Shown here: piece by piece, positions 2,721 through 39,799 of the stretch
Layout of the letters: each line of letters begins with the position of its first letter
Numbering within the stretch: the stretch's first letter is position 1
Sequence record: MW460245.1
DNA: 64,000 nt
Strand: one strand, 5' to 3'
The notes under the pieces: generated by a model
What the model was told of the DNA's origin: nothing
The model's input: the letters and a program-made list of their open reading frames with translations, nothing else
Database searches by the model: none
Translations under genes and position numbers: made by a program

Positions 2721-2815
2721 GTGTTGCAGAAAAACAACACGTAGGCACAGGCGCGAAAATTCGTGCTATAATGACTGCAAGCGCAGCACTTCTTGGTGTT
2801 GCGTACATACAACAC
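2721..2815 (+). promoter_or_regulatory. early promoter module: extended -10 with two TGTTG-N8-CAACA palindromes
   Basis: GTGTTG-CAGAAAAA-CAACAC 2721-2740; TGCTATAAT (TATAAT 2767-2772); GTGTTG-CGTACATA-CAACAC 2796-2815. Confidence 0.8.
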
Positions 2816-2820
2816 ACGTT

Positions 2821-2848
2821 TTCACTGTCGAAGAAAGGACACATCATG
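2821..2848 (+). repeat. conserved leader/RBS repeat
   Basis: TTCACTGTCGAAGAAAGGACACATCATG; near-identical copies at 3126, 18515, 18949, 22210. Confidence 0.85.
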
Positions 2849-3121
2849 ACGAACGCACAAGCAAAGCAGCAGATCCTGAACAACTTCCGTTCGCGCTTCC
2901 CTGCACCTGACTGGCGTAACGCGCTGTACAACGATGACCAGTGGGGCATCGGCGAAGTCACGAAGCGTTTCGAGCTGCGTCATCAAGGCATCGTTCTCGA
3001 AGTCGGCGCGATTGTCTGCGTCCAACGTCGTGTCGATTCAGACAAGTTCGTGACGATTCTCCGTCAGGACTTCATGTGCAGCTCGTCGGTCGAAGTGAAG
3101 TTCCTCAAGCCGGTCGCTTAA
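2846..3121 (+). CDS. hypothetical early protein
   Basis: Starts at the ATG of the conserved leader downstream of the promoter. Confidence 0.8.
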   Translation: MTNAQAKQQILNNFRSRFPAPDWRNALYNDDQWGIGEVTKRFELRHQGIVLEVGAIVCVQRRVDSDKFVTILRQDFMCSSSVEVKFLKPVA

Positions 3122-3125
3122 CCCG

Positions 3126-3153
3126 TTCAACGTCGAAGAAAGGACACATCATG
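3126..3153 (+). repeat. conserved leader/RBS repeat
   Basis: TTCAACGTCGAAGAAAGGACACATCATG. Confidence 0.85.
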
Positions 3154-3477
3154 GCAAATCGCAAACTTTCCGCATACGAAATTCAGCTGGTCGAGAAGCA
3201 CGCAGCAGTCATCGGCGCACCGATGTATGGCCGTCGTGGTTCGCAGGTCTACACCGCAGCGCAAATCGATGCCGCGTTCAACGCTGAACGCGCCGAAGTG
3301 AAGCGCAAGCAACAGCAGGCGATGGCTGACGACAGCGCGTATTTCACCAGCGAAGAATTCCGCAACGAAGTCATCGAGGAGCTTATCGCGAAAGGGGCAA
3401 CATGCGAACAAGCAACGAACCGCACGCGCGATCAGGCACGTCTGTTCGCAGAAGCACGCACCCTCAACCTGATGTAA
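3151..3477 (+). CDS. hypothetical early protein
   Basis: Starts at the ATG of the conserved leader. Confidence 0.8.
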   Translation: MANRKLSAYEIQLVEKHAAVIGAPMYGRRGSQVYTAAQIDAAFNAERAEVKRKQQQAMADDSAYFTSEEFRNEVIEELIAKGATCEQATNRTRDQARLFAEARTLNLM

Positions 3478-3487
3478 GGAGAACACC

Positions 3488-3793
3488 ATGCAAACCTCTT
3501 TCGAAAAGGGTGTCGCCAAGAAGACGCGCGTTCTCGCACAATCGTTCATCAACAACCATCCAGAACTGACTTCGGTCGATGCTGAACTGGCATACTGCAA
3601 GGGCATCGATCACCTCACGCTGGTGCGCAAGGTCAAAGGTAAGCTGTACCGCGCAGGTATCAGCATCGACTACCTGACGAATTGCATTCGCATGACGGTG
3701 ATGAATCGGCACGGTAAGACCGTTCACCTCAGCATCCCGAACGGCACGTCGTTGGTCGCACACCTGAAGTTCTATAACGTTCTCGCTGCGTGA
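3488..3793 (+). CDS. hypothetical phage protein
   Basis: AAGGAG RBS; clean ORF. Confidence 0.8.
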   Translation: MQTSFEKGVAKKTRVLAQSFINNHPELTSVDAELAYCKGIDHLTLVRKVKGKLYRAGISIDYLTNCIRMTVMNRHGKTVHLSIPNGTSLVAHLKFYNVLAA

Positions 3794-3800
3794 GGCACGT

Positions 3801-3959
3801 ATGGAATACCTGAACCGAGTTTTCGAGATCGAGACGGTCGATGCGCTCGGTGGCTCCCATCTTCATGAATTGGTCGCGTGCTCTAAGGATGAAGTGCGCG
3901 AAGCCTGCAAGGACCTGGAAATCGTCGCGATCCGCGACATCACGAACACGCTTAACTGA
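3801..3959 (+). CDS. small hypothetical protein (52 aa, not in ORF track)
   Basis: GAGG RBS; MEYLNRVFEIETVDALGG...TNTLN* fills the gap exactly. Confidence 0.7.
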   Translation: MEYLNRVFEIETVDALGGSHLHELVACSKDEVREACKDLEIVAIRDITNTLN

Positions 3960-3968
3960 GGAGCAACC

Positions 3969-4337
3969 ATGAACAAGCAATTCAAGCAAGGCGACAACAT
4001 CGTCGAGAAGGACGCCCCGCATCGCAAGGGTTTCGTGATGGCAGATCAATCGATGCTCGCGAATGGCGCGGTGCGCGTCTGTTTCGAGGGCGATGAAGAG
4101 GCAACCGCGCTGTTTGCCTCCGCCATCAAATGGCGCTCGTGCTTCACCATCATTGGGTCGAAGACGAGCCCGCATGATGAAGACTACAGCCCAGCTGTGG
4201 TCGACAGCGCCGAAACCATCGAGGCGGCGATGGCGCTGTACAAGACGGTGATGGACTATCCGTTCTCCTGGATCGAATACCATGATGTCCATGGTGATAC
4301 GTGGGACTTCGATCCGCGCAAGGTCGAACGCAAGTAA
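3969..4337 (+). CDS. hypothetical protein, N-terminal SH3/KOW-like barrel possible
   Basis: GAGGAG RBS; FKQGDNIV...GFV...VRVCF pattern. Confidence 0.75.
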   Translation: MNKQFKQGDNIVEKDAPHRKGFVMADQSMLANGAVRVCFEGDEEATALFASAIKWRSCFTIIGSKTSPHDEDYSPAVVDSAETIEAAMALYKTVMDYPFSWIEYHDVHGDTWDFDPRKVERK

Positions 4338-4341
4338 CTGC

Positions 4342-4360
4342 GGGGGCTTCGGCCCCTTTC
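4342..4360 (+). terminator. rho-independent terminator
   Basis: GGGGC-TTCG-GCCCC-TTT; 20-bp GGGGCTTCGGCCCCTTTCAC identical at 40890-40909. Confidence 0.75.
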
Positions 4361-4387
4361 ACCGCATCGAAAACATCAGGAGCACCT

Positions 4388-4672
4388 ATGCATCCCCTCC
4401 ACAAGTGGAAGCTGGACAAGTACAAAGCGCAGTTCCCGGGTCTGAACAGCGAACAAGCCCTTCAGCTCGCAATCGAAGCCGAGCAGTTCAAGAATGACTG
4501 CGGTCCGATGGATCCTGCGTTCGAGTATTTTGCGAACCAACAACACGTCTTCACGCAGTATGCCGAACTCCTGGCGGAAGAGGAAGCAGAGGCGCAAAAG
4601 ATCGCGAAGGAAACGCCGACCGAATTCGCAGCCCGGCACTTGGCAGGCATGAACTGGGAAGAAAAGAAATGA
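4388..4672 (+). CDS. hypothetical phage protein
   Basis: AGGAG RBS before ATG 4388. Confidence 0.75.
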   Translation: MHPLHKWKLDKYKAQFPGLNSEQALQLAIEAEQFKNDCGPMDPAFEYFANQQHVFTQYAELLAEEEAEAQKIAKETPTEFAARHLAGMNWEEKK

Positions 4673-5037
4673 ACGTCAGCCTTCAAAACATCCTGAACGG
4701 CGTGCTGCACGCTGTTGCGTCATCGGTTGACTTCCTGCCTCACGAAGGCGAACCATCGGTCTGGGACACTGCGATCCCTTCCTTCAACATCGTCTCTTAT
4801 GAGGAACTGACGCGTGCAGCCAGTAACGACGGCGGCATGAGCGCAGACTTCCTCAAGATCACGCTTGAATGGAAGGCGACGCTCATGTATCCGGGCGATA
4901 CTTCGCGCATAGTGCGTGCGACGTACCTGTTCGAGGACGATCAATTCGAGGAGCGTTTCGGCGTTCACGGCCTCATCATGAATTTCCACGATCACGTCGT
5001 GCGCGAGCTGAACCTTTCCATCAAGCTGAAGGAGTAG
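4669..5037 (+). CDS. hypothetical phage protein
   Basis: ATGA-coupled ORF. Confidence 0.75.
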   Translation: MNVSLQNILNGVLHAVASSVDFLPHEGEPSVWDTAIPSFNIVSYEELTRAASNDGGMSADFLKITLEWKATLMYPGDTSRIVRATYLFEDDQFEERFGVHGLIMNFHDHVVRELNLSIKLKE

Positions 5038-5039
5038 CC

Positions 5040-5354
5040 ATGATCGTATGGGAGAATCAAAAGCCGCGCCCTGAAACGGCAACGTTAGCGCGGTTCTTCG
5101 AGGACGCACATCCTGAGATATCGGTGATCACCGTCGATCATTACTACAATGACCGGTGGTTCCGAGTACGCGACTGGGAGTGCATTCTCTTGAAGTCGAT
5201 CTCAAATCAAGTGACAGCGCGCATTCTTCTCGACTTCGAGAACGAGGAGGTCTTCGTGTCGTTCGTTGCTGCACATCCCGCAACGCGTAATACTCGTGTT
5301 GCCTGTATGGACGATTTGCTTTCGCACCTTCGGTGCGCACGGGTGATAGGATGA
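5040..5354 (+). CDS. hypothetical phage protein
   Basis: AAGGAG RBS before ATG 5040. Confidence 0.7.
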   Translation: MIVWENQKPRPETATLARFFEDAHPEISVITVDHYYNDRWFRVRDWECILLKSISNQVTARILLDFENEEVFVSFVAAHPATRNTRVACMDDLLSHLRCARVIG

Positions 5355-5548
5355 AAAAGTTTATTCTGTACTGGCTAGACGGCAAGCTGGAGCATATCGA
5401 AGGCAATACCATTGCCCAGGCTATGGGTGCAGCAGGCTACGGCGCAGGCGCTATCGCTGCGCTGGACTTCTACGATGAAAGCACTGAGGTCAAATGGCGC
5501 TGGAACGCAGAGCTGAAAACCTGGGTGAACATCAAGGAGTTTGTATGA
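5351..5548 (+). CDS. conserved-type small phage protein
   Basis: ATGA-coupled; GNTIAQAMGAAGYGAGAIAALDFY motif. Confidence 0.75.
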   Translation: MKKFILYWLDGKLEHIEGNTIAQAMGAAGYGAGAIAALDFYDESTEVKWRWNAELKTWVNIKEFV

Positions 5549-5718
5549 AGCGCGGCATCTATGCAGGCGTTGTCGTGGTAATCCTCATGCTCCTGTTCTC
5601 CTATCTTGCGATGGTAGTGAAACGTGAGCTGGGTGACAGCTACGAGCAACTGGTCCTGATTCTCGGTGCTATCATCGCGGCCGTTATTGGGATCGCCATC
5701 AATCAAGCGGGGAACTGA
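5545..5718 (+). CDS. small two-TM membrane protein
   Basis: GGAG RBS, two hydrophobic helices. Confidence 0.7.
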   Translation: MKRGIYAGVVVVILMLLFSYLAMVVKRELGDSYEQLVLILGAIIAAVIGIAINQAGN

Positions 5719-5719
5719 C

Positions 5720-6424
5720 ATGAAGTGGCTCACGAAGTGGTTGAAGTGGTTCGACAAGAACGCGTGGCTTGACGACGTAAACGAGGAGCTCAAAGCCAAG
5801 AACACGAAGAAGACCGAAGCACGGGACCTTCTCGAGGTAGCACTTGGTCTTGCCCACGAGATCACAAACCACGCCTGCAAGAATGAGATGCAGGCGGAAT
5901 GCGTCTACTACTGCTGGTTTGAGGAGAAGCATTGGCCTGCTGTCAACATGGCAGTCAACTTCCTCAAGGAGAACAAGTTCAAGCATACCCTCGAGGTGAC
6001 TTACGAGGAGAGGATGCAGGAACGATCAGAGCATATGATACCTCTGCCGGGTGACAAAGAAACGACGCGTGTTAAGGTGCGTCACTACACGATCACGATC
6101 CTCCGCAACGTCAAACCGATTCGCATCGAAGACGCGCAGCGGGAATCGGCCGCAGCACGCAGCACGATGGAACCTGTGTTGATCGAACGACAGCAAGCCG
6201 TTCTCGGTCGTGTGTTCAGCGCTATCTGGGACGCTGTGAATCTTGGCCACTACACGACGACACTCTCGCTTCCGCTGATCGCCGTTGATCGGAACGGCAA
6301 CAACATTCCGATTATTTTGGAAGGCGTCATCAACGAACTCAGCACTAAGCATGGTTTCGTTAATGCGATCGGCAAGGTCGAAGGCAACTACGTCATTTTC
6401 TACATCAACTGGGAACCGAAATGA
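5720..6424 (+). CDS. hypothetical protein; C-terminal domain paralogous to ORFs 8219, 41965, 42255
   Basis: Ends ...VINELSTKHGF...FYINWEPK, same pattern as the paralogs. Confidence 0.75.
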   Translation: MKWLTKWLKWFDKNAWLDDVNEELKAKNTKKTEARDLLEVALGLAHEITNHACKNEMQAECVYYCWFEEKHWPAVNMAVNFLKENKFKHTLEVTYEERMQERSEHMIPLPGDKETTRVKVRHYTITILRNVKPIRIEDAQRESAAARSTMEPVLIERQQAVLGRVFSAIWDAVNLGHYTTTLSLPLIAVDRNGNNIPIILEGVINELSTKHGFVNAIGKVEGNYVIFYINWEPK

Positions 6425-6786
6425 GATTGCAATATGTCCTCGTTCACACCATTGAGTTCCTGAAGAATGACTTCCAGACGATTGGTTACCAAAACCGTAT
6501 CGACAACTGGATGACTCAGTGGACTATTATCAACAACTTCCATCCGGTCGTCATCGACCGCGACACGCAGAAACTGGACGACATCCTCACGCGCTGGTGT
6601 GAGAAGCATATCAGCGTGGTGAAGCGTGAATTTCGAGATTCGATCCACGCCGCGTACCGAGACCATTACGACTTCGCGGCTGATTTCGAGATGACGTATT
6701 CAGTGCAAGACATCGTCCTCGGAACCGAGTTCTACGCTAAAGGTGGACTGATCGTCAACCGTATCAACATGGGGCAACAAGTATGA
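6421..6786 (+). CDS. hypothetical phage protein
   Basis: ATGA-coupled ORF. Confidence 0.7.
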   Translation: MRLQYVLVHTIEFLKNDFQTIGYQNRIDNWMTQWTIINNFHPVVIDRDTQKLDDILTRWCEKHISVVKREFRDSIHAAYRDHYDFAADFEMTYSVQDIVLGTEFYAKGGLIVNRINMGQQV

Positions 6787-7328
6787 AAGTCATCGCTAAA
6801 CGTCTGAACCTGCCTGGTCGTCAGTACGAGTACATGAGGATTGATAGCGGTTCCGGCTATCCGGAATGGACACCGCACCTCCAGACTGCTGCATTCTTCG
6901 TAACCGCACACGACGAGGATCACCTGACGCGTTGGATGAGCGACCTGCGGCGCGGTCGATTCAAGGACATGCTTCCCGGCATAGGTGAGGAGCTTACAGT
7001 GCTGTCCTACGGCATCGTTGACGAAGAGACGATCCCTGCTGCTGAACGCTTCGTCCGTAAACGGCATGACGCCCACAAGCGCTGGTGCGTCGAACTGCGA
7101 GGACTCACCGAACAGCAGCACCGCGTTGTTACGCAGGTCATGACGAACACCTACATGGCCTCTGAAGACTACATGCTGCGCGATGATGCAGGTGGCTTCC
7201 AGTTGGGCGGCACGCACTACCAACCTGACGGCTGGGTGCTGATCGAATTCTATTCCGACGATGATGTTCGGATCGATAACTTCGTCGTACATCTCAACAA
7301 CCGCGTGTTCAACGACAAATCGGCGTAG
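6783..7328 (+). CDS. hypothetical phage protein
   Basis: ATGA-coupled ORF ending before a promoter module. Confidence 0.75.
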   Translation: MKVIAKRLNLPGRQYEYMRIDSGSGYPEWTPHLQTAAFFVTAHDEDHLTRWMSDLRRGRFKDMLPGIGEELTVLSYGIVDEETIPAAERFVRKRHDAHKRWCVELRGLTEQQHRVVTQVMTNTYMASEDYMLRDDAGGFQLGGTHYQPDGWVLIEFYSDDDVRIDNFVVHLNNRVFNDKSA

Positions 7329-7354
7329 CCTAGCTGCCGGAGCGCTGTTTCAGA

Positions 7355-7420
7355 CTGTTGTTTTTCTGCAACAGCGTTCTCACAGACAGGTTGGCGCAGC
7401 GCGCAGTTTCGTGTTACAAT
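7355..7420 (+). promoter_or_regulatory. early promoter module with upstream palindrome
   Basis: CTGTTG-TTTTTCTG-CAACAG 7355-7374; TTGGCG 7391-7396, 18-bp spacer, TG-T-TACAAT 7415-7420; leader TCACGAAGAAAGGTGA 7459-7474 identical to 39831-39846. Confidence 0.8.
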
Positions 7421-7478
7421 AAGCTGTGGGCACAGGCCCGGTTATCTAAACAGTTCATTCACGAAGAAAGGTGATTCT

Positions 7479-7916
7479 ATGAAAGCAGCTAAAGGTTCGG
7501 TTCGCACTTCCGGTCTGTATTTCAACGGCGCGCTGAAGGAGGACGACAACGCCATCGCGTTCGAAGCGTTCCTCGATCCCCAACTGATTCTCCGCCACTT
7601 CAAGCTGAAAGCCGAAACGAAGTCGTTCGACCAGATGCTTGGCGACTACGGTTTCTGCAAGCTGTGGCTGACCAACGAGGGCTTTGTGCAGTTTCGCACG
7701 ACGCCTGCGAAGTTCAGCAAGACGGTCGACGCGCTGCGCCTGTACATGGAACGCGTCGCGACGGTGCGCAAGGCTCACGAAGCGCTGCCGGTTTTCAAGA
7801 CGAAGCTGCTCGGCGAATTGTCGGTCTCGCGTATGATCCAGCTGAACCGCGTAGCCGAAAAGGCAGAATGCAAGCAGGTGTCGCGCTCGACGTACGGCGC
7901 TGACTGGACGATCTAA
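7479..7916 (+). CDS. hypothetical early protein (monocistronic cassette)
   Basis: Own promoter, AAGAAAGGTG leader and terminator. Confidence 0.8.
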   Translation: MKAAKGSVRTSGLYFNGALKEDDNAIAFEAFLDPQLILRHFKLKAETKSFDQMLGDYGFCKLWLTNEGFVQFRTTPAKFSKTVDALRLYMERVATVRKAHEALPVFKTKLLGELSVSRMIQLNRVAEKAECKQVSRSTYGADWTI

Positions 7917-7930
7917 CTCCCTCACACATC

Positions 7931-7950: not shown

Positions 7951-7976
7951 CACCGTTTCACAATCTGGAGAGCCTC

Positions 7977-8691: not shown

Positions 8692-8694
8692 GCA

Positions 8695-18295: not shown

Positions 18296-18345
18296 CCGTT
18301 TCACCGCAGCACCGGGAAGGACGCCTACAGTTGGTGTCCTTCCCT

Positions 18346-18451
18346 CTGTTGCTTTTCTACAACACAGGTCTGACTGCATGGTTGCGACGTGCAGATTCGT
18401 GCTATAATTACTACAAGCACCAGACCCTCAGGTGTTGTAAAAGAGCAACGC
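18346..18451 (+). promoter_or_regulatory. early promoter module with two palindromes
   Basis: CTGTTG-CTTTTCTA-CAACAC 18346-18365; TGCTATAAT (18403-18408); GTGTTG-TAAAAGAG-CAACGC 18432-18451. Confidence 0.8.
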
Positions 18452-18514
18452 TTAGGATCACCCAGAATTCACGTCTAAGAAAGACGACACTTGCAGTAAC
18501 TATCCCGTACAAAG

Positions 18515-18543
18515 TCAACTTGTCGAAGAAAGGACAAATCATG
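18515..18543 (+). repeat. conserved leader/RBS repeat
   Basis: TCAACTTGTCGAAGAAAGGACAAATCATG. Confidence 0.8.
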
Positions 18544-18906
18544 GCACGCAATACGAAAGCAAAACGCGAACTTTTCGCAAAGCTGGACGCACAGGCAGAA
18601 GCACGCGACCGCAAGGTCAAGGCGAAGACCGTGAAGTTTGCGGCAGCGCTGGCGAAAGCCTACAAGCTTCGCGCTGAAACGTACACGATGCGGCTCGCGT
18701 ATATCGATTGCATCGTCTTGACCGGCGCGAAGCGTCAGATTCGCATCATGGTGAACTACCTCACGAAGCAAGTTACTGTCCGGCTGCCTGATTCGAAGCT
18801 GAACATCGTTGCCGATAACGCCGCACACCTGCAGCGCATCGTTAAAAACGTGCTGACGCCCGCAGCGAACGACAGCAACGCCGACGCCGAAGAAAAAGCA
18901 GCCTAA
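18541..18906 (+). CDS. hypothetical basic early protein
   Basis: Starts at leader ATG. Confidence 0.8.
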   Translation: MARNTKAKRELFAKLDAQAEARDRKVKAKTVKFAAALAKAYKLRAETYTMRLAYIDCIVLTGAKRQIRIMVNYLTKQVTVRLPDSKLNIVADNAAHLQRIVKNVLTPAANDSNADAEEKAA

Positions 18907-18925
18907 CGCGAAAACGTGCTATAAT
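18907..18925 (+). promoter_or_regulatory. early extended -10 promoter
   Basis: CGCGAAAACGTGCTATAAT, identical to 30377-30395. Confidence 0.75.
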
Positions 18926-22051: not shown

Positions 22052-22135
22052 CCCAGCGTCTCGAAATGTTAAGAAAGGTGCAAACTTGACTTGACAGTTT
22101 TTGACATTTGGTACGGCACAGCAGTTTCAAGAAGG

Positions 22136-22206
22136 TTGGCGCAGGGACGAAAAGCGTGTTACAATGAAGTGCGCGCACTCCCTGCGCTGTTGCGAAAATA
22201 CAACAC
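22136..22206 (+). promoter_or_regulatory. early promoter module with downstream palindrome
   Basis: TTGGCG 22136-22141, 18 bp, TG-T-TACAAT 22160-22165; CTGTTG-CGAAAATA-CAACAC 22187-22206. Confidence 0.8.
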
Positions 22207-23012: not shown

Positions 23013-26000
23013 ATGCAAAAGACTCAAGTTTCCATCCTCGTCGCTTCCCTGTTCGCAGCAGCCGGTGTCAACGCAGCAGGTTCGCTCCAATTCGTGGATC
23101 GTGGCAATCCGAACCAGATCGCGAAGGACTGCATCGACGGCAAGTCGGGTAGCGGTTGCGTCGGTACGCGCAGCAGCGGTTACGTGGCAGTGTCGACCGC
23201 ATCCCCGATTCTGCAGGGCAATGGTGCAGTCGGCGGTACGGGTGGCATCGCGATCGGTGATCGTGCGAACGCGAACAAGGACAACAAGGGCACCGGCGAC
23301 AACAACGGCGGCGCAATGGCGATCGGCGTGGCAGCGCAAGCAATCAACAACAGCGCGATGGCGATCGGTACGGCAGCAGTCGCAACCGGCAACACGGCAA
23401 TCGCGATGGGTCGTCAGTCGGCAGCAACCGGCGAGTTCTCGATGGCGATGGGCAACGTCGCGAACGCAACGGGCGACCGCAGCGTGGCAATTGGTCACTC
23501 GGCGAACGCAGTCGGCGTGCAGTCGGTGGCGATCGGCAACTCGGCAGGTGGTGCCAATGACGGCGTGTCGCAAGGCGCGTCCTACGATGCAGCGACGCAG
23601 ACCCGTTCGGTCGGTGCGCGTAGCGTGGCAATCGGTGCGAATGCACAAACGACCGGCGATGACCAGATCGCGATCGGCAACGGCGCACGCGGCATGACCT
23701 CGGTGGCTGGCAAGGCAGCGTTCTCGAACGAAGCTGTGGCAGCAACTGGTGCGGTTTCGTTCGGCGATCCGAAGGGCACGGGTGTGCAGCGCCAGATCAA
23801 GGGCATCGCCGGTGCAACGGACGGCAACGACGCCGTGAACCTGAACCAGCTGACGGCCGTGAACAGCAGCCTGAGCACGTCGATCGGTGCAGTCGATCAA
23901 CGCGTTACGACGGTGGACAATCGCGTCACGACCGTTTCGAACTCGCTGTCCACGTCGATCAACACGACGAACCAGAACGTGACGAATCTGAGCACGTCGG
24001 TGGACAGCAGCGTGAAGTCGCTCAACACGTCGATCACCAACGTGGACAACCGCGTCACGAACATGGGCGCATCGCTGTCGACCTCGATCAGCAACATCGA
24101 TGGCCGTGTGACGGTGAACGAAGGCAACATCACGAATCTGCAGGCAGCGGACAAGCTGAACGTGAAGTACGATTCGCTGTCGAAGGACAAGGTCACGCTG
24201 GGCGGTGCGAACGGCACGGTGCTGTCGAACGTGAAGGCCGGCACGGCTGATACCGATGCTGTGAACGTCGGTCAACTGAACGGCAAGCTGGCGCCGATCA
24301 ACACGTCGATCACCAACATCAACACGTCGCTTTCGACGGCAACGTCCAACATCACCAACCTGCAAGGTGACGTGAAGAACCTCAGCACGACGGTCGGCGG
24401 TCACACCACGCAGATCAACAACCTGAGTACGTCGCTGAACACGACGAACCAGAACGTGTCGAACCTGACGAACGTGGTCAACGGTCATACGACCGACATC
24501 GGCGCGCTGCAAGAAGCCGACAAGCGCAACGTGAAGTACGATGGCGCCTCGGGCTTCGACAGCGTTACGCTGGCCGGCGGCAAGAACGGCACGAAGGTGA
24601 CCAACGTGGCAGACGGCGCGCTGACCGCAACGTCGAAGGACGCAGTGAACGGCTCGCAGCTCTACGCGACGAACCAGAACCTGACGAACCTCGGCGACAC
24701 GGTGAACCAGATCGATGGTCGCGTGACGAAGGTGGAAGGCAACATCACCAGCATCGGCGACAAGGTGACGAACATCGACAACTCGGTGAACGGCCTGAAG
24801 CAAGACGCCCTCCAGTGGAACAGCACGATGGGCGCCTATGATGCATCGCATGGTTCGGGTGAAGCGCAGAAGATCACGAACGTCGCCGACGGCAAGGTCG
24901 CAGCAGGCAGCAAGGACGCGATCAACGGCGGTCAGCTCTATGACGCGGTGAAGGACGGCGTGTCGAACGGCACGAAGAATGCGGTTCAGTACGACGGTGA
25001 CGACCACACGAAGGTCACGCTGGGCGGTGTCGGTGGTACGACCATCACCAACGTCAAGGCAGGTGAACTGTCGGCAACGTCGAAGGACGCAGTGAACGGC
25101 TCGCAGCTCTTCGAAACGAACACCAACGTTTTGAATCTGGATGGCCGTGTGACTAACATCGATGGCCGTGTCACGAACCTGGACGGCCGTGTGACGAAGG
25201 TCGAAGGTGACGTCACCAACGTCATCAACGGCGAAGTCGGTCTGGTGCAGCAGCATGGTGCTCGCAACCCGATCACGGTCGGCAAGGACACGCTCGGCGG
25301 CGTCGTGAAGTTCAACAATGCTGACGGCGAGACGCGCACGCTGGCAGGTGTGACGGCTGGTGTGGCTGACACGGACGCGGTGAACGTCAAGCAACTGACG
25401 ACAGCAACCGGCAACCTGCAGAACCAAATCAACGTGCAAGGCGACACTATCGTCAAGCATGGCGATACGCTGGTGCAGCAAGGCAACGCGATCACCAACC
25501 TGAACACGAGCGTTACGAACCTTGGTGACAAGGTCACGAACATCGATGGCCGTGTGACGACGAACACGACGAACATCCAGGCACTCCAGCAAGACGCTCT
25601 GCAGTTCAACAAGACCGTCGGGGCCTACGATGCGACGCGTGGCGGCAACGCAACGAAGATCACGGGCGTGGCAGCAGGTAACGTCAACGCAACCAGCACC
25701 GACGCGATCAACGGCTCGCAGCTCTACGCGACCGAGCAGAAGATCAAGGACGGCATCGCTGGTGACATGAAGAATGTGGTCAAGTACACGGACGACACGC
25801 ACGCTGGCATTGCGCTGGACGGCAAGGGCGGTACGAAGATCACCAACGTTCGCGCTGGTACGCTGTCGAACACCAGCACGGACGCGGTGAACGGCTCGCA
25901 ACTGTTCGCAACGAACAATGCAGTTACGAACCTCGATCAACGCGTGACCAAGAACGAGACGAGCATCACCAATCTCGACAACTCGGTCAATGGTCTGAAG

Positions 26001-26798
26001 CAGGATGCTTTGCTGTGGAACAAGGACCTCGGTGCATTCGATGCTTCGCACGGTGGTGTTGCTTCCAAGATCACCAACGTGGCTGACGGTGCGGTCAACG
26101 CTGACTCGAAGGACGCTGTCAACGGCAGCCAGCTGTACAAGTCGATCCAGAATGCTGGTAACCAGTTCGGTTACATCAAATACGACCAGCATGTCGACGG
26201 TTCGATCAACTACGGCAGCATCACGCTGGGTGGTGGTCAAGGTGGTCTGACGCAGATCCACAACGTCGCCGATGGTGTGGCTCCGACTGATGCTGTCAAC
26301 GTTCGTCAGATGGAACAGCATGTGAAGGTCGTCTCGCAAGAGACGGTCAAGAACTACTGGAACGACCACAAGGATGAGCTGAAGGGTGATAAGGGCGACA
26401 CCGGCGCAGCGGGTCCGCAAGGTCCGAAGGGCGACGATGGTGCAGCAGGCCCGGCAGGTCCGAACCAACCGGCACCTCTTCCGGAAGGTCTGGCAACGCA
26501 AGACGATCTGGGCAAGGTGCAGCGTGACCTGAACGGTCTGCGTGGCGATATGAGCGCGCTCAAGAAGGACATGAACGCAGGTATCGCATCGGCGATGGCT
26601 GTTGCATCGCTCCCGCAACCGAACCGTCCGGGCGAAAACATGGTCGCACTGGGCACGGCAACGTACCAGGGCGCACAAGGTTTCGCGATCGGCATCTCGC
26701 GTGTCACGTCGAACGATAAGTGGGTCATCAAGGGTGCAGTGACGACCAACACGCGTGGTGCGTTCGGTGCAGCACTTGGCGCTGGCTACAAGTTCTAA
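23013..26798 (+). CDS. YadA-family trimeric autotransporter adhesin
   Basis: Signal peptide; YadA head repeats (AMAIG/SVAIG..A.A); neck motifs DAVN..QL; stalk coiled coils; C-terminal anchor GIASAMAVASLPQ...GAGYKF. Confidence 0.95.
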   Translation: MQKTQVSILVASLFAAAGVNAAGSLQFVDRGNPNQIAKDCIDGKSGSGCVGTRSSGYVAVSTASPILQGNGAVGGTGGIAIGDRANANKDNKGTGDNNGGAMAIGVAAQAINNSAMAIGTAAVATGNTAIAMGRQSAATGEFSMAMGNVANATGDRSVAIGHSANAVGVQSVAIGNSAGGANDGVSQGASYDAATQTRSVGARSVAIGANAQTTGDDQIAIGNGARGMTSVAGKAAFSNEAVAATGAVSFGDPKGTGVQRQIKGIAGATDGNDAVNLNQLTAVNSSLSTSIGAVDQRVTTVDNRVTTVSNSLSTSINTTNQNVTNLSTSVDSSVKSLNTSITNVDNRVTNMGASLSTSISNIDGRVTVNEGNITNLQAADKLNVKYDSLSKDKVTLGGANGTVLSNVKAGTADTDAVNVGQLNGKLAPINTSITNINTSLSTATSNITNLQGDVKNLSTTVGGHTTQINNLSTSLNTTNQNVSNLTNVVNGHTTDIGALQEADKRNVKYDGASGFDSVTLAGGKNGTKVTNVADGALTATSKDAVNGSQLYATNQNLTNLGDTVNQIDGRVTKVEGNITSIGDKVTNIDNSVNGLKQDALQWNSTMGAYDASHGSGEAQKITNVADGKVAAGSKDAINGGQLYDAVKDGVSNGTKNAVQYDGDDHTKVTLGGVGGTTITNVKAGELSATSKDAVNGSQLFETNTNVLNLDGRVTNIDGRVTNLDGRVTKVEGDVTNVINGEVGLVQQHGARNPITVGKDTLGGVVKFNNADGETRTLAGVTAGVADTDAVNVKQLTTATGNLQNQINVQGDTIVKHGDTLVQQGNAITNLNTSVTNLGDKVTNIDGRVTTNTTNIQALQQDALQFNKTVGAYDATRGGNATKITGVAAGNVNATSTDAINGSQLYATEQKIKDGIAGDMKNVVKYTDDTHAGIALDGKGGTKITNVRAGTLSNTSTDAVNGSQLFATNNAVTNLDQRVTKNETSITNLDNSVNGLKQDALLWNKDLGAFDASHGGVASKITNVADGAVNADSKDAVNGSQLYKSIQNAGNQFGYIKYDQHVDGSINYGSITLGGGQGGLTQIHNVADGVAPTDAVNVRQMEQHVKVVSQETVKNYWNDHKDELKGDKGDTGAAGPQGPKGDDGAAGPAGPNQPAPLPEGLATQDDLGKVQRDLNGLRGDMSALKKDMNAGIASAMAVASLPQPNRPGENMVALGTATYQGAQGFAIGISRVTSNDKWVIKGAVTTNTRGAFGAALGAGYKF
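24627..25110 (+). repeat. intragenic 37-bp exact direct repeat in the autotransporter stalk
   Basis: GCAACGTCGAAGGACGCAGTGAACGGCTCGCAGCTCT at 24627-24663 and 25074-25110. Confidence 0.85.
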
Positions 26799-30376: not shown

Positions 30377-30438
30377 CGCGAAAACGTGCTATAATGTGCT
30401 TACGCGCACCACGGACAGGTGTTGCGTAGAAACAACAC
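30377..30438 (+). promoter_or_regulatory. early promoter module with downstream palindrome
   Basis: CGCGAAAACGTGCTATAAT 30377-30395; GTGTTG-CGTAGAAA-CAACAC 30419-30438. Confidence 0.8.
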
Positions 30439-34611: not shown

Positions 34612-34859
34612 CCAAGAAGGCAGAAACGATCCGTATTCCCTCAGCCCTGAAGTGCATCAACTGCCACAAGCCTGCAGGTGAGCACCAGTCCCAAACGCTA
34701 CATTGCCCTCAAGGGTTGAAAGGCCGAATAGGCTACACTCGGTTCTCAACAACGGTTCGCTTTGCTCCCGTCCTGCCTCACCTTCCAAAGTCTCTGAAGG
34801 AAGCCATCGACAAGGTACGGAGGGCTTCCGAGGCTTCGGTGCGGGCTGTCTACTGCTAG
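34608..34859 (+). CDS. small Cys/His protein; frame stays open after its TAG to 35033
   Basis: CINCHKPAGEH...C; in-frame continuation TDLQYERDLDTLAN...TTPTA*. Confidence 0.65.
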   Translation: MTKKAETIRIPSALKCINCHKPAGEHQSQTLHCPQGLKGRIGYTRFSTTVRFAPVLPHLPKSLKEAIDKVRRASEASVRAVYC

Positions 34860-34977
34860 ACGGACCTGCAATATGAGCGTGACCTCGACACGCTGGCCAA
34901 TATGGCAGTGTACGATCTGGCGCTGGAGGTGAAGAGGCTGAATGACGAGAACAAGAGGCTGAGAAAGGAGGCACGAA

Positions 34978-35322
34978 GTGAACGAGACAAATCCATCGAA
35001 GCCCTCATTCGAAAGACCACCCCGACCGCATAGGTCGATTTTCGATGGTGACGGCAGGCGCACAATCCGCCCGGTAAACGTGCCTGCCAATACCATTCCG
35101 ATTCCAGTAAATAGGTCTGTGGCCCGAGGCATCATCCGAAAGCTTCACACTTTGGATGGCGTCTCGTACCATGGGCGTAATGGCGCCACGGCTTGGGTCG
35201 TGGCGACCTATTGCAAGGAAGAGCAGTTGAACTGCTCGATCGAGTTTGGCGGCGCTATGTGCGTCATCAAGGTGGAGCTTAGGAGCAATGACAGCAGCAG
35301 AACTGACCGAGAACGAACGTGA
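34978..35322 (+). CDS. hypothetical phage protein
   Basis: AAGGAGG RBS before GTG; contains an internal CAGTAAATAG at 35105-35114. Confidence 0.55.
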   Translation: MNETNPSKPSFERPPRPHRSIFDGDGRRTIRPVNVPANTIPIPVNRSVARGIIRKLHTLDGVSYHGRNGATAWVVATYCKEEQLNCSIEFGGAMCVIKVELRSNDSSRTDRERT

Positions 35323-35443
35323 GGCTTGTGCCAAGTCTGACCTCATCGTTCTCGTGTCCTACATCTCGACGAAGTACGACATCCCTGTGGATCGTTCAAT
35401 CGCCCTCTTAGAGCAAGTCACTGACGCGCTCAAGGCCCGCTAA
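35288..35443 (+). CDS. small hypothetical protein
   Basis: AGGAG RBS. Confidence 0.65.
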   Translation: MTAAELTENEREACAKSDLIVLVSYISTKYDIPVDRSIALLEQVTDALKAR

Positions 35444-35469
35444 TCTAAAACCAACTATAAGGAACAAAG

Positions 35470-36903
35470 ATGGATGAGCTGATACCCAAGAGTAAGGTGG
35501 ACTTCTGGGTCAAACACTCGCAAAACGTGATGCTTATCGGTAAGCATGGTATCGGTAAGACGCACATCATCATGCAGGCTGCGAAGGACCATGGCCTGAA
35601 ACTCAAATACTTCTCGTGTGCAACCCTCGACCCCTGGGTTGACTTCATCGGCATTCCGAAGGAACGGACGATGAAGAAGGGAGACAAGAAGATTGCCTAC
35701 CTGGACCTGATCCGTCCGAAGGACTTTGCGCTGGATCGTGTGGAGTTCATCTTCCTGGACGAGTTGAACCGTGCTGATCCGAAGGTGCTGAACGCCGTTC
35801 TGGAGCTTGTGCAATTCCGCTCTATCAACGGTAAGAAGTTCAAGAACCTCAAGATGATCTGGGCTGCGATCAATCCTCCGGCATCGGAGACTGGTGGCAC
35901 GATCTACCAAGTGCAGGAGCTTGACCCTGCTCTCATGTCGCGGTTCCCGGTCAAGATGTATCTGCCGTTCGATATCTCGCGCTCGTACATGCGTGGTAAA
36001 TACGGCGCGCAGATTGCTAACGCAGTGTGTGGGTGGTGGAAGGGGTTGGCTGAACAGGTGAAGGATGACTTCCCGCCGCGTTCGGTCGACTACGCACTCG
36101 ACTACCTCAAGATGGGCGGAGATGTTGACGACTGCCTTCCCTCTTCGGTTTCGAAGTCCCAATTCCTTCAAGTCGTAGGTGGGACGTATGACGCTGAGGA
36201 AGAGGAAGACCTGGTCACTGCGGGGTTGGTTTCAAACAGCGGGGCGCAGGACGTCACTCGCAACGATCTGAATGAACTTTGCAGCACGGCATCGAAGCGG
36301 CGTGCAGGCCAGCTCATCATAGCAATACGAAGGCTGGCAGCGGACGATCTCATCTCGTTGTACCGCGCGTTGAGTGATCCGTATACAGCTTCGACAGCGA
36401 ATCCGATTCGCGCACTCTTGGCATCGCTGAATCCGGCGCAGATGAACATGATCACCACGAACGTGGCGAACGGTACTCTGAAGGCGCCGCTGCCCCAGTT
36501 GAAGACGCCTGCGAAGGCAGTGAGTCATTTCAGCAACATCTACCCGTCGACCATCATCGATGAGACGGCCGACGACATCATCCGCTCCTTCCGTAGTGGC
36601 AAGACGAAGAGCAGCAAGCGACTCCTTGATGACGAGGAAGACCTTGAAGATGAGGATGAAGGCGAAGAAGATCCTGATGTCGTGAAGGCTTCCAAGATTG
36701 TTAAGGGCATGAAGCTCAAGAACGGTAAGGTTATTGGTGCAAAGGTCAAAGCGTATAAGAAGGCTGTGAAGTCTGCGGCTGACCTGAAGCGCGAGATGGC
36801 TCTTGCCGATCAGGAGATCGATGAGAAGTTTGCGAAGGCTCGTAAGTCTAGCTTCAAGTCCAAAATGGAAGCAGCCGCTATTGACGGATGGTTTGACGAC
36901 TGA
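35470..36903 (+). CDS. MoxR/CobS-like AAA+ ATPase
   Basis: Walker A GKHGIGKT, Walker B FIFLDELNRA, AAINP, LDPALMSRF; extended acidic/basic C-terminus. Confidence 0.9.
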   Translation: MDELIPKSKVDFWVKHSQNVMLIGKHGIGKTHIIMQAAKDHGLKLKYFSCATLDPWVDFIGIPKERTMKKGDKKIAYLDLIRPKDFALDRVEFIFLDELNRADPKVLNAVLELVQFRSINGKKFKNLKMIWAAINPPASETGGTIYQVQELDPALMSRFPVKMYLPFDISRSYMRGKYGAQIANAVCGWWKGLAEQVKDDFPPRSVDYALDYLKMGGDVDDCLPSSVSKSQFLQVVGGTYDAEEEEDLVTAGLVSNSGAQDVTRNDLNELCSTASKRRAGQLIIAIRRLAADDLISLYRALSDPYTASTANPIRALLASLNPAQMNMITTNVANGTLKAPLPQLKTPAKAVSHFSNIYPSTIIDETADDIIRSFRSGKTKSSKRLLDDEEDLEDEDEGEEDPDVVKASKIVKGMKLKNGKVIGAKVKAYKKAVKSAADLKREMALADQEIDEKFAKARKSSFKSKMEAAAIDGWFDD

Positions 36904-36905
36904 CC

Positions 36906-38714
36906 ATGGCAAAAGATCCGAAGTCCAAACAAGACAAGCGGATGGAGAAGCGGCATAAGCAGTTCGCCGCTCTCAAAGATGAGATCCGCAAGCTGAGTAC
37001 GCAGTATTGGTCCGTGTTCGCGAACGCTACGATAGGTTTCAGTTCGAAGAAGTTTACGAGCAAGAGTGGACATAAAACGGAAGGATCGTATTTGACGGCG
37101 AAAAACCGTGCGTTCCACTTCGTGTTCGAGCCCTCGCTGTGGGACAAGCTGAATGCCCAGGAGCGCGTGTTCGAGATGCTGCACCTCGTCACGCACCAGC
37201 TCAACGGTCACTTCAAACGGTTCAAGAATCCGAGCGGTGAGCTTGAATCGAAGGCGATGGACTTGGCCACCAATCACCTCCTGATGTCGAAATTCAGCTT
37301 CGACCTGGAGAACATGCCTTACGTGAAGGAGAAAGAGCAGTTCGTCTGGAACGTTCAGCCTGAAGGTATGCAGCCGAACCTGAGCGCTGAGGAGTACATG
37401 TTCGCTTTGAAGGCGCACCAGCAGCAACAGGAGAAGCTGAAACAGGAGCAAGACGATGAGGATCAGGAAGATGACGAAGGCGAGAGCGGAGACTCTGACA
37501 ACTCCGAAGAAGGGGATGGCGATGAAGCTCCTCCCTCATCAGGAGGCGGTTCTCAAGAGTCTGAGGAAGATGAAGACGGTGACGATACCGACAGTTCCTC
37601 CGGATCGGATGAGTCGGATGAGTCCGATGGATCTGATGATTCAGAGGATAATGATCGAGGAGGATCTGGGTCTGACGCTGACGAAGCCGATGAGCCTGAA
37701 AATGGAGACGACGAAGATTCCTCCTCTGACGGAGAGTCAGATGAAGAGGAGGCCGAAGATGCTGACGGGGACTCCGACTCAACTGATGAATCATCCGATG
37801 GTTCCGAAGACGGGGAAGACGATCCTGACTCTGATGCAGATGGAGAGGACGAATCCGAATCAGACGGTGAGCCTGATGATGCCGAGTCAGACGACGGAGA
37901 AGAATCCGATGGAAGCGAAGGTGATCCTGACGACGATGACGAACCTGCCGAAGGCTACGACGACCACGACCGATCAGTAATCGATCCTGAGGATCTTCAG
38001 GAGATTCTGGACGATGCGAAGGAGATTCTTGCTGAGGAAGAGGACTTATCCGATGACGAAGCAGAAGACCAGCTGAAGGACGCAGCGACCAACGATCCTC
38101 CGAAGAGCAAAATGCATCAAGCAGGTCTTGGTGCTGACAGCGGCTTCTCGAAGGACGGTGGCAACCTGAAGTATAGGGACAGCGCATGGCGTTCGTTCAG
38201 TCTCAAGCTGCTGAAGGGCATTCTGGACGCACATGGCAAGACCTCATGGCTGCCGAACAAGCGATTCGCCTCGATCCAGAGGTCGTTCGGACCTAAGGTG
38301 TTCCTGCCATCCTCGCTTGCTCCTGCGAAGCGGAAGATCAAGGTCGTCGTGTTCCTCGACACGTCTGGTAGCTGCTGGATGTTGCGTCCATACTTCTTTG
38401 GTTTGTTGAAGGCGATTCCGACTGACCTGTTCGATATCAGCACCTACGTGTTCACTACGACGGTGAAGCCCTTCGATATCAACAATCCCATCTTCCCTGC
38501 CGGCGGTACGTCATACGTTGAGCTGGAGTCGTATTTCGAGAAGGAGAGGGAGGAGATCACCTACGCGTTCGTGTTCAGCGATGGGGACATCATCGGGAAG
38601 TTCCTGCCGAAGAATCCTCAGGCGTGGCATTTCTTCATGGACCCGAACAACATGGATACGAGCCACCTGCACCCTGCGATCAAGGTGCATTCGATCGAAC
38701 CGTTCATCAAGTAG
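36906..38714 (+). CDS. VWA (DUF2201/CobT-like) partner protein with long acidic linker
   Basis: N-terminal peptidase-like domain (FEMLH, N.A.D..IN-like region), about 200-aa D/E/S/G linker, MIDAS DTSGS, SDGD. Confidence 0.85.
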   Translation: MAKDPKSKQDKRMEKRHKQFAALKDEIRKLSTQYWSVFANATIGFSSKKFTSKSGHKTEGSYLTAKNRAFHFVFEPSLWDKLNAQERVFEMLHLVTHQLNGHFKRFKNPSGELESKAMDLATNHLLMSKFSFDLENMPYVKEKEQFVWNVQPEGMQPNLSAEEYMFALKAHQQQQEKLKQEQDDEDQEDDEGESGDSDNSEEGDGDEAPPSSGGGSQESEEDEDGDDTDSSSGSDESDESDGSDDSEDNDRGGSGSDADEADEPENGDDEDSSSDGESDEEEAEDADGDSDSTDESSDGSEDGEDDPDSDADGEDESESDGEPDDAESDDGEESDGSEGDPDDDDEPAEGYDDHDRSVIDPEDLQEILDDAKEILAEEEDLSDDEAEDQLKDAATNDPPKSKMHQAGLGADSGFSKDGGNLKYRDSAWRSFSLKLLKGILDAHGKTSWLPNKRFASIQRSFGPKVFLPSSLAPAKRKIKVVVFLDTSGSCWMLRPYFFGLLKAIPTDLFDISTYVFTTTVKPFDINNPIFPAGGTSYVELESYFEKEREEITYAFVFSDGDIIGKFLPKNPQAWHFFMDPNNMDTSHLHPAIKVHSIEPFIK

Positions 38715-38727
38715 ACGACGCTGAGGG

Positions 38728-38795
38728 CTGCTGTTGCGTAAAAACAACAGCAGTCCAACAACAGGTTGCGCTGCGCCCCAGATCGCGTTTAGACT
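38728..38795 (+). promoter_or_regulatory. early promoter module with upstream palindrome
   Basis: CTGCTGTTG-CGTAAAAA-CAACAGCAG 38728-38753; TTGCGC 38766-38771, 18 bp, TAGACT 38790-38795. Confidence 0.7.
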
Positions 38796-38854
38796 GAGCT
38801 TGTTGTCACGATGACAACGTGGCAGCACTGTTCTTTTACAACTGGAGAAGCAAC

Positions 38855-39142
38855 ATGGCAAAGCAAGACCTGCGCGTCAACGATCATGGTATCGACGTTC
38901 GCGACCTGAAGCCCGGCATGTGGATCACGGTGTGGTGGTACGGCAAAGGTGACGAGCGCATCTACGACCGTTGTCTGCTGCTCGAGGTTGAGGAGAAGCC
39001 GCACAACTTCAAGGGCGTGCGTGACATCACCGTGTTCGTTCGCGAGAAGAAGGGGCTGTGCATCAATCGATTCGCGCAGCACGATCAGGTGGTCGAGATT
39101 CACGGCATGCTGAGCACGGACAGCGTACCGCTGTCGCAGTAA
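38855..39142 (+). CDS. hypothetical protein, SH3/KOW-like
   Basis: GGAG RBS; VRDLKPGMWITV pattern. Confidence 0.75.
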   Translation: MAKQDLRVNDHGIDVRDLKPGMWITVWWYGKGDERIYDRCLLLEVEEKPHNFKGVRDITVFVREKKGLCINRFAQHDQVVEIHGMLSTDSVPLSQ

Positions 39143-39632
39143 CGAAGGGGTGCCCTATGGGGCACCTTCTTTCACATCATCGAGGATCGACCATGTGGTT
39201 TCATGTCACTGATAAAGACTACGGGCCGGCAGTGAAGTTCTCGCCGCGCGTGCCGACTGACAAGCTCCCGCCCTGGGAGGATAAGACTACACCTCGTATA
39301 TGCTTCTCGCCGTCTATCGAAAAAGCGTTGATGGGTTGCATGGGCGTCGGCTGCCCTATCGAAGGCGTTCATGACCTGTCCTACTACAGCAAGCGAGAAG
39401 GACATCGCAGGACGTCGCACCATCATCCGTATGTGTACGTGTACGCTATCTCAGACAGGCACGATGTAGTCACGCCTACCAAGGCGCAAGTGCGCGACGT
39501 GGAAACCAGCGGTGAGGTGTGGCGCGTTCGACCTACGACACTTCGCAAGTTCGGTCGTATTGACGTGATGCGGTCGCTGGCAGAAAAGGTCGTAGTCGTC
39601 GACTGACGAAGGGGTGCCCTACGGGGCACCTT
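39142..39632 (+). repeat. 27-bp direct repeats (terminator hairpins) flanking one gene
   Basis: ACGAAGGGGTGCCCTA(T/C)GGGGCACCTT at 39142-39168 and 39606-39632, one mismatch in the loop. Confidence 0.9.
39193..39606 (+). CDS. candidate ADP-ribosyltransferase-fold protein
   Basis: WFHVT (His), PRICFSPS (SxS), YVYVY strand and GEVW (Glu) spaced as in small ART domains. Confidence 0.5.
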   Translation: MWFHVTDKDYGPAVKFSPRVPTDKLPPWEDKTTPRICFSPSIEKALMGCMGVGCPIEGVHDLSYYSKREGHRRTSHHHPYVYVYAISDRHDVVTPTKAQVRDVETSGEVWRVRPTTLRKFGRIDVMRSLAEKVVVVD

Positions 39633-39681
39633 TTCCCATATCTGGGCCGCTTTGTACTGTCTAGTACACGGCTGAAATCGA

Positions 39682-39799
39682 CTGTTGTATTTTCGCAACA
39701 CTGCGGAACAGCGGTGACACAGCACGTTTTGACGTGTTGTTTTTCTGCAACACTGCTGCGAGACACAGGTTGGCGTGGGGTTAGGCTTCATGCTAAAAT
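39682..39799 (+). promoter_or_regulatory. early promoter module with two upstream palindromes
   Basis: CTGTTG-TATTTTCG-CAACAC 39682-39701; GTGTTG-TTTTTCTG-CAACAC 39734-39753; TTGGCG 39770-39775, 18 bp, TG-C-TAAAAT 39794-39799. Confidence 0.8.

Follow-up and report, generated by a model that had tools for sequence, protein, structure and literature searches.

The window analysed in this work is a stretch of 64,000 nucleotides from Burkholderia phage BCSR5 (MW460245.1, 227,351 bp) and is identical to positions 62,001-126,000 of that record. The genes in the window are all on the plus strand and their annotation is almost entirely hypothetical. The window carries repeated copies of an 18-bp element, TGTTG-N8-CAACA (the site), which is the subject of this work. 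The sites flank nearly every strong host-type promoter of one BCSR5 gene block, about 60 bp before the transcription start and about 27 bp after it. The element is real, regulatory, and shared among phages.

BCSR5 is an unclassified jumbo myovirus in a genome-based family that also contains Sarumanvirus (PMC12388082). Its closest relative at the DNA level is Ralstonia phage RSL1. The relatives of its major head protein are found in BcepSauron and BcepSaruman (73%), RSL1 (67%), and Achromobacter phage Motura (60%). About 7% of the BCSR5 genome lies outside open reading frames (ORFs).

Nine exact sites were identified in the window (Table 1), where 0.12 sites were expected from shuffles of the window and no shuffle reached nine. 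Another copy is a variant that ends with CAACG. The motif, its ten copies, and their coordinates had been given in a preliminary description of this DNA and are the same here, except that the earlier positions are one base lower because a 20-bp unit had been counted where the site has 18 bp. The statement that 2721-2740 is the exact reverse complement of 39734-39753 is also correct when the sequence is read. The scan of the whole genome and of relatives that the same description had proposed as a check identified 14 exact sites in BCSR5, and more in RSL1 and in IMG/VR. The rest of the BCSR5 record outside the window was obtained piecewise for this count. Two one-mismatch sites are also present in gaps, at record positions 52567 and 80433, where the latter is the variant at window 18433. 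All BCSR5 sites are within record 35,157-101,752, which is one 67-kb plus-strand block, and they occupy non-coding gaps of this variable ORFan region (35-102 kb) with few RSL1 homologues. The whole record was scanned and no sites were found in the replication and structural regions. TGTTG-N8 is the commonest palindrome with 5-bp arms in the BCSR5 genome, with 14 copies compared with 8 for the next. The refined consensus is TGTTGY-(A/T-rich N6)-RCAACA, an 18-bp near-palindrome with the half-site TGTTGY. The central six bases are A/T-rich and often form an A-tract. The spacer is asymmetric and differs among the copies within one genome.

The transcription start was predicted as 7 nt after the -10 hexamer and the centres of the sites were computed from it. 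The pattern TGNTANAAT has seven plus-strand occurrences in the BCSR5 genome, all in intergenic gaps, and six of the seven carry a site. The lone promoter of this class without a site is also in the window. The tie between the motif and extended -10 promoters that had been described earlier is thus borne out and is tight. The two positional classes described earlier, upstream and downstream of the promoter, are likewise recovered, with distances that are one nucleotide longer because the site is counted as 18 bp. The four upstream copies at 7356, 18347, 38732, and 39735 end 38-41 nt before the -10 hexamer and the copy at 2722 ends 27 nt before it. The four downstream copies start 22-24 nt past the -10 hexamer. 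The pair spacings reported for the window are correct. Paired copies had been described as lying near whole helical turns apart, and this holds genome-wide for six spacings (22, 52, 75, 86, 94, and 96 bp), each at most 0.19 turn off an integer at 10.5 bp per turn (post hoc probability about 0.003, where the pairs are in part interdependent, as both copies keep a set distance from the promoter).

Table 1. Sites, promoters, and neighbouring signals in the BCSR5 window. Positions are window coordinates and site centres are relative to the predicted transcription start.
Feature	Position	Strand	Remarks
Terminator-like G+C hairpin with T-rich tail	2679..2706	+	closes gene block before cassette P1; read by eye, no tool score
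Site TGTTGCAGAAAAACAACA	2722..2739	none	upstream of P1, centre about -48.5
Promoter P1, extended -10 TGCTATAAT	2764..2772	+	no clear -35; sequence read and pattern search
Site downstream of P1	2797..2814	none	centre about +27.5; 75 bp from 2722
Conserved ribosome-binding block GAAGAAAGG-N-ATG	2830..2848	+	likely true start 2846
Site upstream of P2	7356..7373	none	centre about -62.5
Promoter P2, GGTTGGCG, 18-nt spacer, TGTTACAAT	7389..7420	+	
Intrinsic-terminator-like hairpin	18314..18344	+	just before cassette P3
Site upstream of P3	18347..18364	none	centre about -59.5
Promoter P3, GGTTGCG element and TGCTATAAT	18380..18408	+	
Variant site (ends CAACG) downstream of P3	18433..18450	none	centre about +27.5; 86 bp from 18347
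Conserved ribosome-binding block	18525..18543	+	likely true start 18541
Site-free extended -10 promoter TGCTATAAT	18917..18925	+	pattern search
Promoter P4, GGTTGGCG, 18-nt spacer, TGTTACAAT	22134..22165	+	
Site downstream of P4	22188..22205	none	no upstream partner; centre about +25.5
Promoter P5, extended -10 TGCTATAAT	30387..30395	+	pattern search
Site downstream of P5	30420..30437	none	no upstream partner; centre about +27.5
Site upstream of P6	38732..38749	none	centre about -61.5; flanks lengthen stem to 11 bp
Promoter P6, GGTTGCGC, 18-nt spacer, TAGACT	38764..38795	+	weakest -10 of the set
Distal site upstream of P7	39683..39700	none	centre about -114.5; 52 bp from 39735
Proximal site upstream of P7	39735..39752	none	centre about -62.5
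Promoter P7, GGTTGGCG, 18-nt spacer, TGCTAAAAT	39768..39799	+	

The repeated cassette consists of a terminator, a site, a host-type promoter, an optional second site, and a conserved ribosome-binding site, in that order. The sites had been described as intergenic throughout. This holds after start correction, whereas two deposited coding sequences (window 2771-3121 and 18334-18906) overrun promoters and the sites at 2797, 18347, and 18433. Judging from the conserved GAAGAAAGG-N-ATG block, the true starts of these coding sequences are likely 2846 (annotated 2771) and 18541 (annotated 18334).

The element is not a regulon private to BCSR5. The same element is found at promoters of RSL1, of RSL1-like metagenomic phages, and of 48 unrelated IMG/VR loci. 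Seven exact sites are present in RSL1 (231 kb). The RSL1 genome contains eight copies of GCATAAT, all on the plus strand, and a site lies just upstream of seven of them. The gap between the site and the -35 is 14-16 nt for about five RSL1 promoters, as counted by eye. RSL1 has been reported to rely on the RNA polymerase of its host (PMC5468394), in keeping with promoters of the sigma70 type. Exact sites at promoters were also identified in RSL1-like metagenomic phages, namely a 215-kb IMG/VR contig (L253) and L271/L272. A BLAST search of one cassette against cultured phages matched the site in BCSR5 and RSL1 only, where the other matches were to the promoter part of the query.

The IMG/VR scan with one 18-mer matched more than 120 contigs of 29-60% G+C. 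The same loci hold 82 further sites, where one or two were estimated by chance. These loci have 464 non-identical matches to the promoter pattern TTGACN-N16-18-TANNNT, and the motif is present at most 60 nt upstream in 73 of them (3.7 expected), distributed over 48 loci. Perfect 5-N8-5 palindromes upstream of these promoter matches number 131. The arm is TGTTG in 73 and the next commonest arm has only 5, which indicates that the sequence is conserved and not merely the pairing. The gaps to the -35 peak at 6, 15-16, 28, and 40 nt, which correspond to centres of -50.5, -60.5, -72.5, and -84.5, about one helical turn apart. Minor off-phase peaks are present at 3 and 9-10 nt. The spacer occurs in both orientations relative to transcription (46 vs 25). 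The motif-bearing contigs share almost no proteins with BCSR5. Many of them belong to an uncultured T4-like clade with RNase H that is 44-47% identical to that of cyanophages, Melnitz, and phiM12. Methylophilales phage Melnitz, which is among the closest cultured relatives of this clade by RNase H, has no motif in a 41-kb stretch. Unrelated dispersed repeats with the same arms were also encountered, as TGTTG-TCCGCGGA-CAACA in Streptomyces loci (L137, L165, L171, and L198) and with paired TGCCCTCA/TGAGGGCA spacers in many Sulfurovum loci.

BcepSauron, a phage of Burkholderia cenocepacia, is syntenic with BCSR5. The exact site is absent from the 262,653 bp of BcepSauron that were scanned. The ORFan region of BcepSauron repeats a palindrome of its own, AATAACCC-N11-GGGTTATT, that abuts the -35 TTGAC of its promoters. 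This palindrome has seven copies at minus-strand promoters in NC_049851.1 4.5-25.4 kb (L266), and the cassettes are alike over about 100 bp. The presence of a different palindrome at the equivalent place indicates that the palindrome is lineage-specific and that the architecture of palindrome plus early promoter is shared. A lineage-specific stem-loop within a shared architecture has been reported for the promoter-early stem-loop (PeSL) cassettes of T4-type phages (Arbiol 2010, PMC2839356; Comeau 2014, PMC4122927), specifically in the latter work.

The element is read here, with a confidence that falls somewhat short of even, as a double-stranded DNA operator for a sequence-specific protein in a PeSL-like early promoter cassette. 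This protein probably acts as a dimer or as two dimers, and it is probably encoded by the phage. The arm sequence is kept across phages of 29-60% G+C that share almost no proteins, which argues for a sequence-specific factor. Three observations speak for DNA recognition, namely the conserved arms, the preference for certain helical positions, and the lack of a fixed orientation. The occurrence of both spacer orientations is more in line with a DNA site than with one RNA hairpin whose loop is read. The lack of the site in BcepSauron, which has its own palindrome, fits lineage-specific pairs of factor and operator and favours a phage-encoded factor.

We consider it unlikely, while still deserving attention, that the element is a PeSL-type stem-loop that acts as an RNA or single-stranded DNA hairpin (attenuator, terminator, insulator, or mRNA-end hairpin) and as an exchange hot spot for ORFan cassettes, with no dedicated regulator. 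The layout equals that of published PeSLs in variable ORFan regions (PMC2839356, PMC4122927), and many sites start right past the stop codon of the upstream gene when their contexts are read by eye. Folded as RNA, the ten window sites are predicted to form hairpins of -3.1 to -16.6 kcal/mol, where several are weak and seven of the ten have a z-score of -2.3 or lower. The flanks add at least 3 bp to the stem in 1 of 14 sites in BCSR5, 3 of 7 in RSL1, and 9 of 83 in IMG/VR (about one expected for IMG/VR), and some sites are followed by U-tracts. The different palindrome of BcepSauron would also suit this explanation, as T4-type lineages likewise vary the sequence of their stem-loops. However, a plain hairpin should exhibit varied and co-varying arms, and one arm dominates in unrelated phages. 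Only the 5-bp arms can pair in 58 of 83 IMG/VR sites and 6 of 14 BCSR5 sites. A T-rich tail follows the site in none of the 14 BCSR5 sites, none of the seven RSL1 sites, and 7 of 83 IMG/VR sites. These counts of flank extension and T-rich tails indicate that a minority of sites double as terminator-like stems and that most do not. No BCSR5 site out of 14 is a G+C-rich stem followed by a U-tract. Separate proper terminator hairpins stand just upstream of the sites of two BCSR5 cassettes (P1 and P3), and the copies at +27 would terminate their own transcript. The element also does not behave as an RNA site of the nut/boxB type, as most copies are upstream of the promoter, the spacers are in both orientations, and no Rfam family matches the window. 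The 5' RNA hairpins that the preliminary description had offered as an alternative cannot account for the upstream copies, and a hairpin role keeps some standing.

It is rather improbable that the phages instead use the element to bind a protein that their host cell (Burkholderiales or other) contains before infection, for example a global regulator or a nucleoid protein, which would act from the class I position to boost their first promoters. Whatever activates these earliest promoters has to predate phage gene expression, and the centres at -60.5, -72.5, and -84.5 fit class I activation. A host protein would also suit a motif that is found in phages sharing almost no proteins and for which no phage regulator was found. 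On the other hand, BcepSauron has the same host genus and no copy of the site, and promoters that match TTGACN-N16-18-TANNNT need no activator. Paired sites were also looked for in 185,579 genomes of bacteria and archaea, which is a weak test as it covers pairs only. Among the matches listed, all are unrelated repeats, such as those in Streptomyces and Sulfurovum, and none is from Burkholderia or Ralstonia. We know of no host operator of this sequence.

The recombination sites suggested in the preliminary description, in the form of core sites of a site-specific recombinase or a homing-type enzyme with short arms around an asymmetric 8-bp spacer, are very improbable even with the asymmetric spacer, the position of sites at cassette boundaries, and the GIY-YIG and HNH endonuclease genes that are common in motif-bearing phages, because the arms are only 5-6 bp compared with about 9-13 bp in tyrosine-recombinase core sites. 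Moreover, strand exchange would be blocked by the spacers, which vary between copies of one genome. The BCSR5 annotation lists no integrase or recombinase, and a strict tie to promoter position is unexpected for such sites.

The protein that would bind the operator was searched for among the genes of BCSR5 and its relatives. Subtraction of proteins with homologues in the motif-free BcepSauron from those present in both BCSR5 and RSL1 left 13 proteins, which include a MoxR AAA+/VWA pair and the RSL1 ORF317 family. The pair (window 35470-38714) consists of a MoxR-type AAA+ ATPase of 477 amino acids followed by a 602-amino-acid protein with metallopeptidase-like DUF2201_N and VWA domains. It is kept in RSL1 (ORF091/092) and has no BcepSauron homologue. 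This AAA+ protein near the sites was rejected as the factor, as it is of the MoxR type with a VWA partner and has no DNA-binding domain. The ORF317 family has about 150 amino acids and is found in RSL1-like phages only (L255:4251-4682; BCSR5 record 37159-37623; L271:10001-10447). In RSL1 and in L271/L272, a promoter that carries a site immediately precedes its gene. No exact site is present in the 15 kb examined of L270, a related contig. The family appeared ribbon-helix-helix-like by eye and was rejected, as its AlphaFold model consists of a beta-beta-alpha-beta3 fold and a long helix. A basic, conserved 64-amino-acid protein was rejected because its relatives occur in loci without the motif, and a C4 zinc protein of the topoisomerase II operon because it is present in RSL1-like phages only. 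The families that co-occur in motif-bearing loci (T4-type RNase H, DUF6433, SegE/GIY-YIG, ClpP, SWIM, and WYL_2) include no plausible operator binder. RSL1 ORF064, which is annotated as a DNA binding protein, has no BCSR5 homologue.

A pattern search for Ogr-type zinc fingers in ORFs of at most 160 amino acids of BCSR5 and RSL1 found none and returned a TraR/DksA-like protein and a CX2C-X13-C-X8-C protein as by-products. The former has 71 amino acids (BCSR5 record 197380-197595; L005:45380-45595) and is kept in RSL1 as ORF187, where it is annotated as a DksA-like zinc-finger protein. The first CxxC of the BCSR5 protein is degenerate. By eye, the RSL1 copy resembles a small zinc protein of the TraR/DksA type, and the protein may bind the secondary channel of RNA polymerase. 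The latter has 103-108 amino acids and is highly conserved (BCSR5 record 47804-48115; RSL1 ORF330; L253 9998-10324). Its gene precedes those of a 268-312-amino-acid protein and the topoisomerase II large subunit in BCSR5, RSL1, and L253, and a site-bearing promoter is upstream of the operon in BCSR5 and L253. Seen outside this search, lysine/alanine-rich histone H1-like proteins adjoin a site in L253 (7727-8512 and 9150-9917), one of them with a long poly-glutamate tail, and their BCSR5 homologue is at record 39199-40041. A protein with an H-NS C-terminal DNA-binding domain, likewise noted in passing, is encoded at BCSR5 record 42846-43184.

Further genes were also noted. A 1261-amino-acid ORF (window 23013-26798) lies within a stretch of unusually high AT skew (0.31 for 24001-26000). 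Genes of the 7-deazaguanine pathway (GTP cyclohydrolase I, QueE, and QueD-like PTPS) are present at BCSR5 record 7.8-17.4 kb and suggest modified DNA. The QueD homologue is 48% identical in IMG/VR locus L042 and also matches ORFs in the motif-bearing L032 and L118.

Several findings weigh against the operator reading. No DNA-binding domain (helix-turn-helix, ribbon-helix-helix, or Ogr-type) was found with Pfam and PHROGs in site-adjacent genes or in small proteins shared by BCSR5 and RSL1, a set of ORFs outside of which lies RSL1 ORF016 with its XRE helix-turn-helix. The ORF317-family model is confident over residues 1-95 and has no significant structural match in the PDB. The site is not a clean palindrome, as 18 of the 21 BCSR5 and RSL1 sites have C..A or T..G at positions 6 and 13 and none has C..G there, which makes it a pseudo-palindrome. 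The fixed spacing in one genome could come from copying of the whole cassette and not from selection, and the distance from the site to the -35 ranges from 1 to 41 nt in IMG/VR. The IMG/VR sample was seeded by one exact 18-mer, and about half of the matches are coding (V-A-E-K-Q-Q frame), where only the intergenic ones were used. A minority of sites are in long G+C stems with U-tracts that are terminator-like. Many promoters elsewhere match TTGACN-N16-18-TANNNT and should need no activator.

If the element is an operator, the cassette would drive transcription of blocks of function-unassigned genes by host RNA polymerase early in infection, and we infer the early timing of the BCSR5 promoters as part of this proposal. 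A protein bound at -60 could touch the alpha C-terminal domain of RNA polymerase and might aid its recruitment. Where the promoter is strong, the protein might instead retain the polymerase or push alpha off the upstream DNA. The site at +27 is in the initially transcribed region, where a bound protein could block elongation, and this copy may pair with the upstream copy on the same helix face to form a loop that silences the promoter. Both the alpha contact at -60 and the block or loop through the +27 copy are suggested by analogy. Most likely, an early phage product would act through the sites to tune the early promoters or to shut them off at a set time. The dimeric regulator put forward in the preliminary description, which would both activate and shut off early genes, stays hypothetical, as no regulator was found among the genes searched.

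It is possible, although we regard it as doubtful, that TGTTGY-N6-RCAACA is the operator of a new regulator, or of a factor that contacts RNA polymerase alpha, for early host-polymerase promoters in RSL1-like jumbo phages and a large uncultured T4-like clade. If this is true, the element would represent a widespread early-transcription switch with a role comparable to that of T4 MotA/AsiA and yet unrelated to it. In at least two cultured phages (BCSR5 and RSL1), and in many uncultured ones, almost all strong and presumably early promoters carry this short, exact piece of DNA. It bears on the timing of early genes in jumbo phages and in T4-like phages without MotA/AsiA. It provides a direct handle for pull-down of the factor, aids the annotation of early promoters and the correction of gene starts, and lets one ask whether PeSL-type cassettes are regulatory switches besides recombination substrates. 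Should the factor turn out to belong to the host, the element would point to a host regulator that phages exploit. BCSR5 was among the eight phages that were aerosolised in an in vitro phage-inhalation model, which gives its early programme practical value (PMC8573233).

The motif is described in no paper found in a literature search that did not cover the original RSL1 genome paper (Yamada 2010). The element was compared with known systems that resemble it in sequence, placement, or mechanism. The likeness to two of them is a mechanism analogy only, with similar A-tract-rich sites and no relation of sequence or protein. The phi29 protein p4 binds upstream of host-type promoters and both activates and represses them via the alpha C-terminal domain. 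GalR binds operators near -60 and in the transcribed region (gal OE/OI) and loops out the promoter between them. The TyrR boxes of enterobacteria, TGTAAA-N6-TTTACA, have the same 6-N6-6 geometry, the same upstream and downstream placement, and the same occurrence in pairs as the sites here, and differ in the half-site sequence. Upstream boxes activate via alpha, boxes over or downstream of the promoter repress, and paired boxes are cooperative. TyrR is a host AAA+ protein with a helix-turn-helix, unlike the sole AAA+ protein near the sites here, which is the MoxR-type protein described above.

The activator sites of P2 Ogr, P4 Delta, and 186 B at late promoters have the consensus TGT-N12-ACA (PMC3931495). 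TGTTG-N8-CAACA is a subset of this consensus with centres from -48 to -63. Both are 18-bp hyphenated dyads with TGT/ACA ends that lie upstream of the -35 of promoters for host RNA polymerase. Ogr sites are centred near -55 and Ogr contacts the alpha subunit. The differences are that the Ogr/Delta sites serve late promoters whose -35 is poor and which depend on the activator, that the activator is a C4 zinc finger (CX2CX22CX4C) of which none was found in BCSR5 or RSL1, and that the P2 consensus leaves positions 4-6 of the half-site unspecified. The promoters here have an extended -10 or TTGACN-N16-18-TANNNT, are ahead of ORFan and replication-side genes, and do not have the features of activator-dependent late promoters.

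The PeSL cassette is the closest known concept and was absent from the preliminary description. It is a repeated intergenic composite that consists of an inverted repeat, an A/T-rich tract, a sigma70-type early promoter, a Shine-Dalgarno sequence, and a start codon. The BCSR5 cassettes likewise have a sigma70-like promoter of either kind named above, an adjacent inverted repeat, and the GAAGAAAGG-N-ATG block. Both are concentrated in variable ORFan regions, and the sequence of the inverted repeat varies by lineage, as it does between BcepSauron and BCSR5. However, the published stems are G/C-rich, are strong terminators, and are lineage-specific in sequence. In contrast, the arms of the element here are short (5-6 bp), poor in G+C, and identical across very distant phages, copies are also present downstream of the promoter at the fixed +27 position, and the BCSR5 copies have no U-tracts. 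Composite promoter/stem-loop cassettes are a known kind of element. What is new is the conserved palindrome that resembles an operator, together with its copy at a fixed +27 and its wide distribution.

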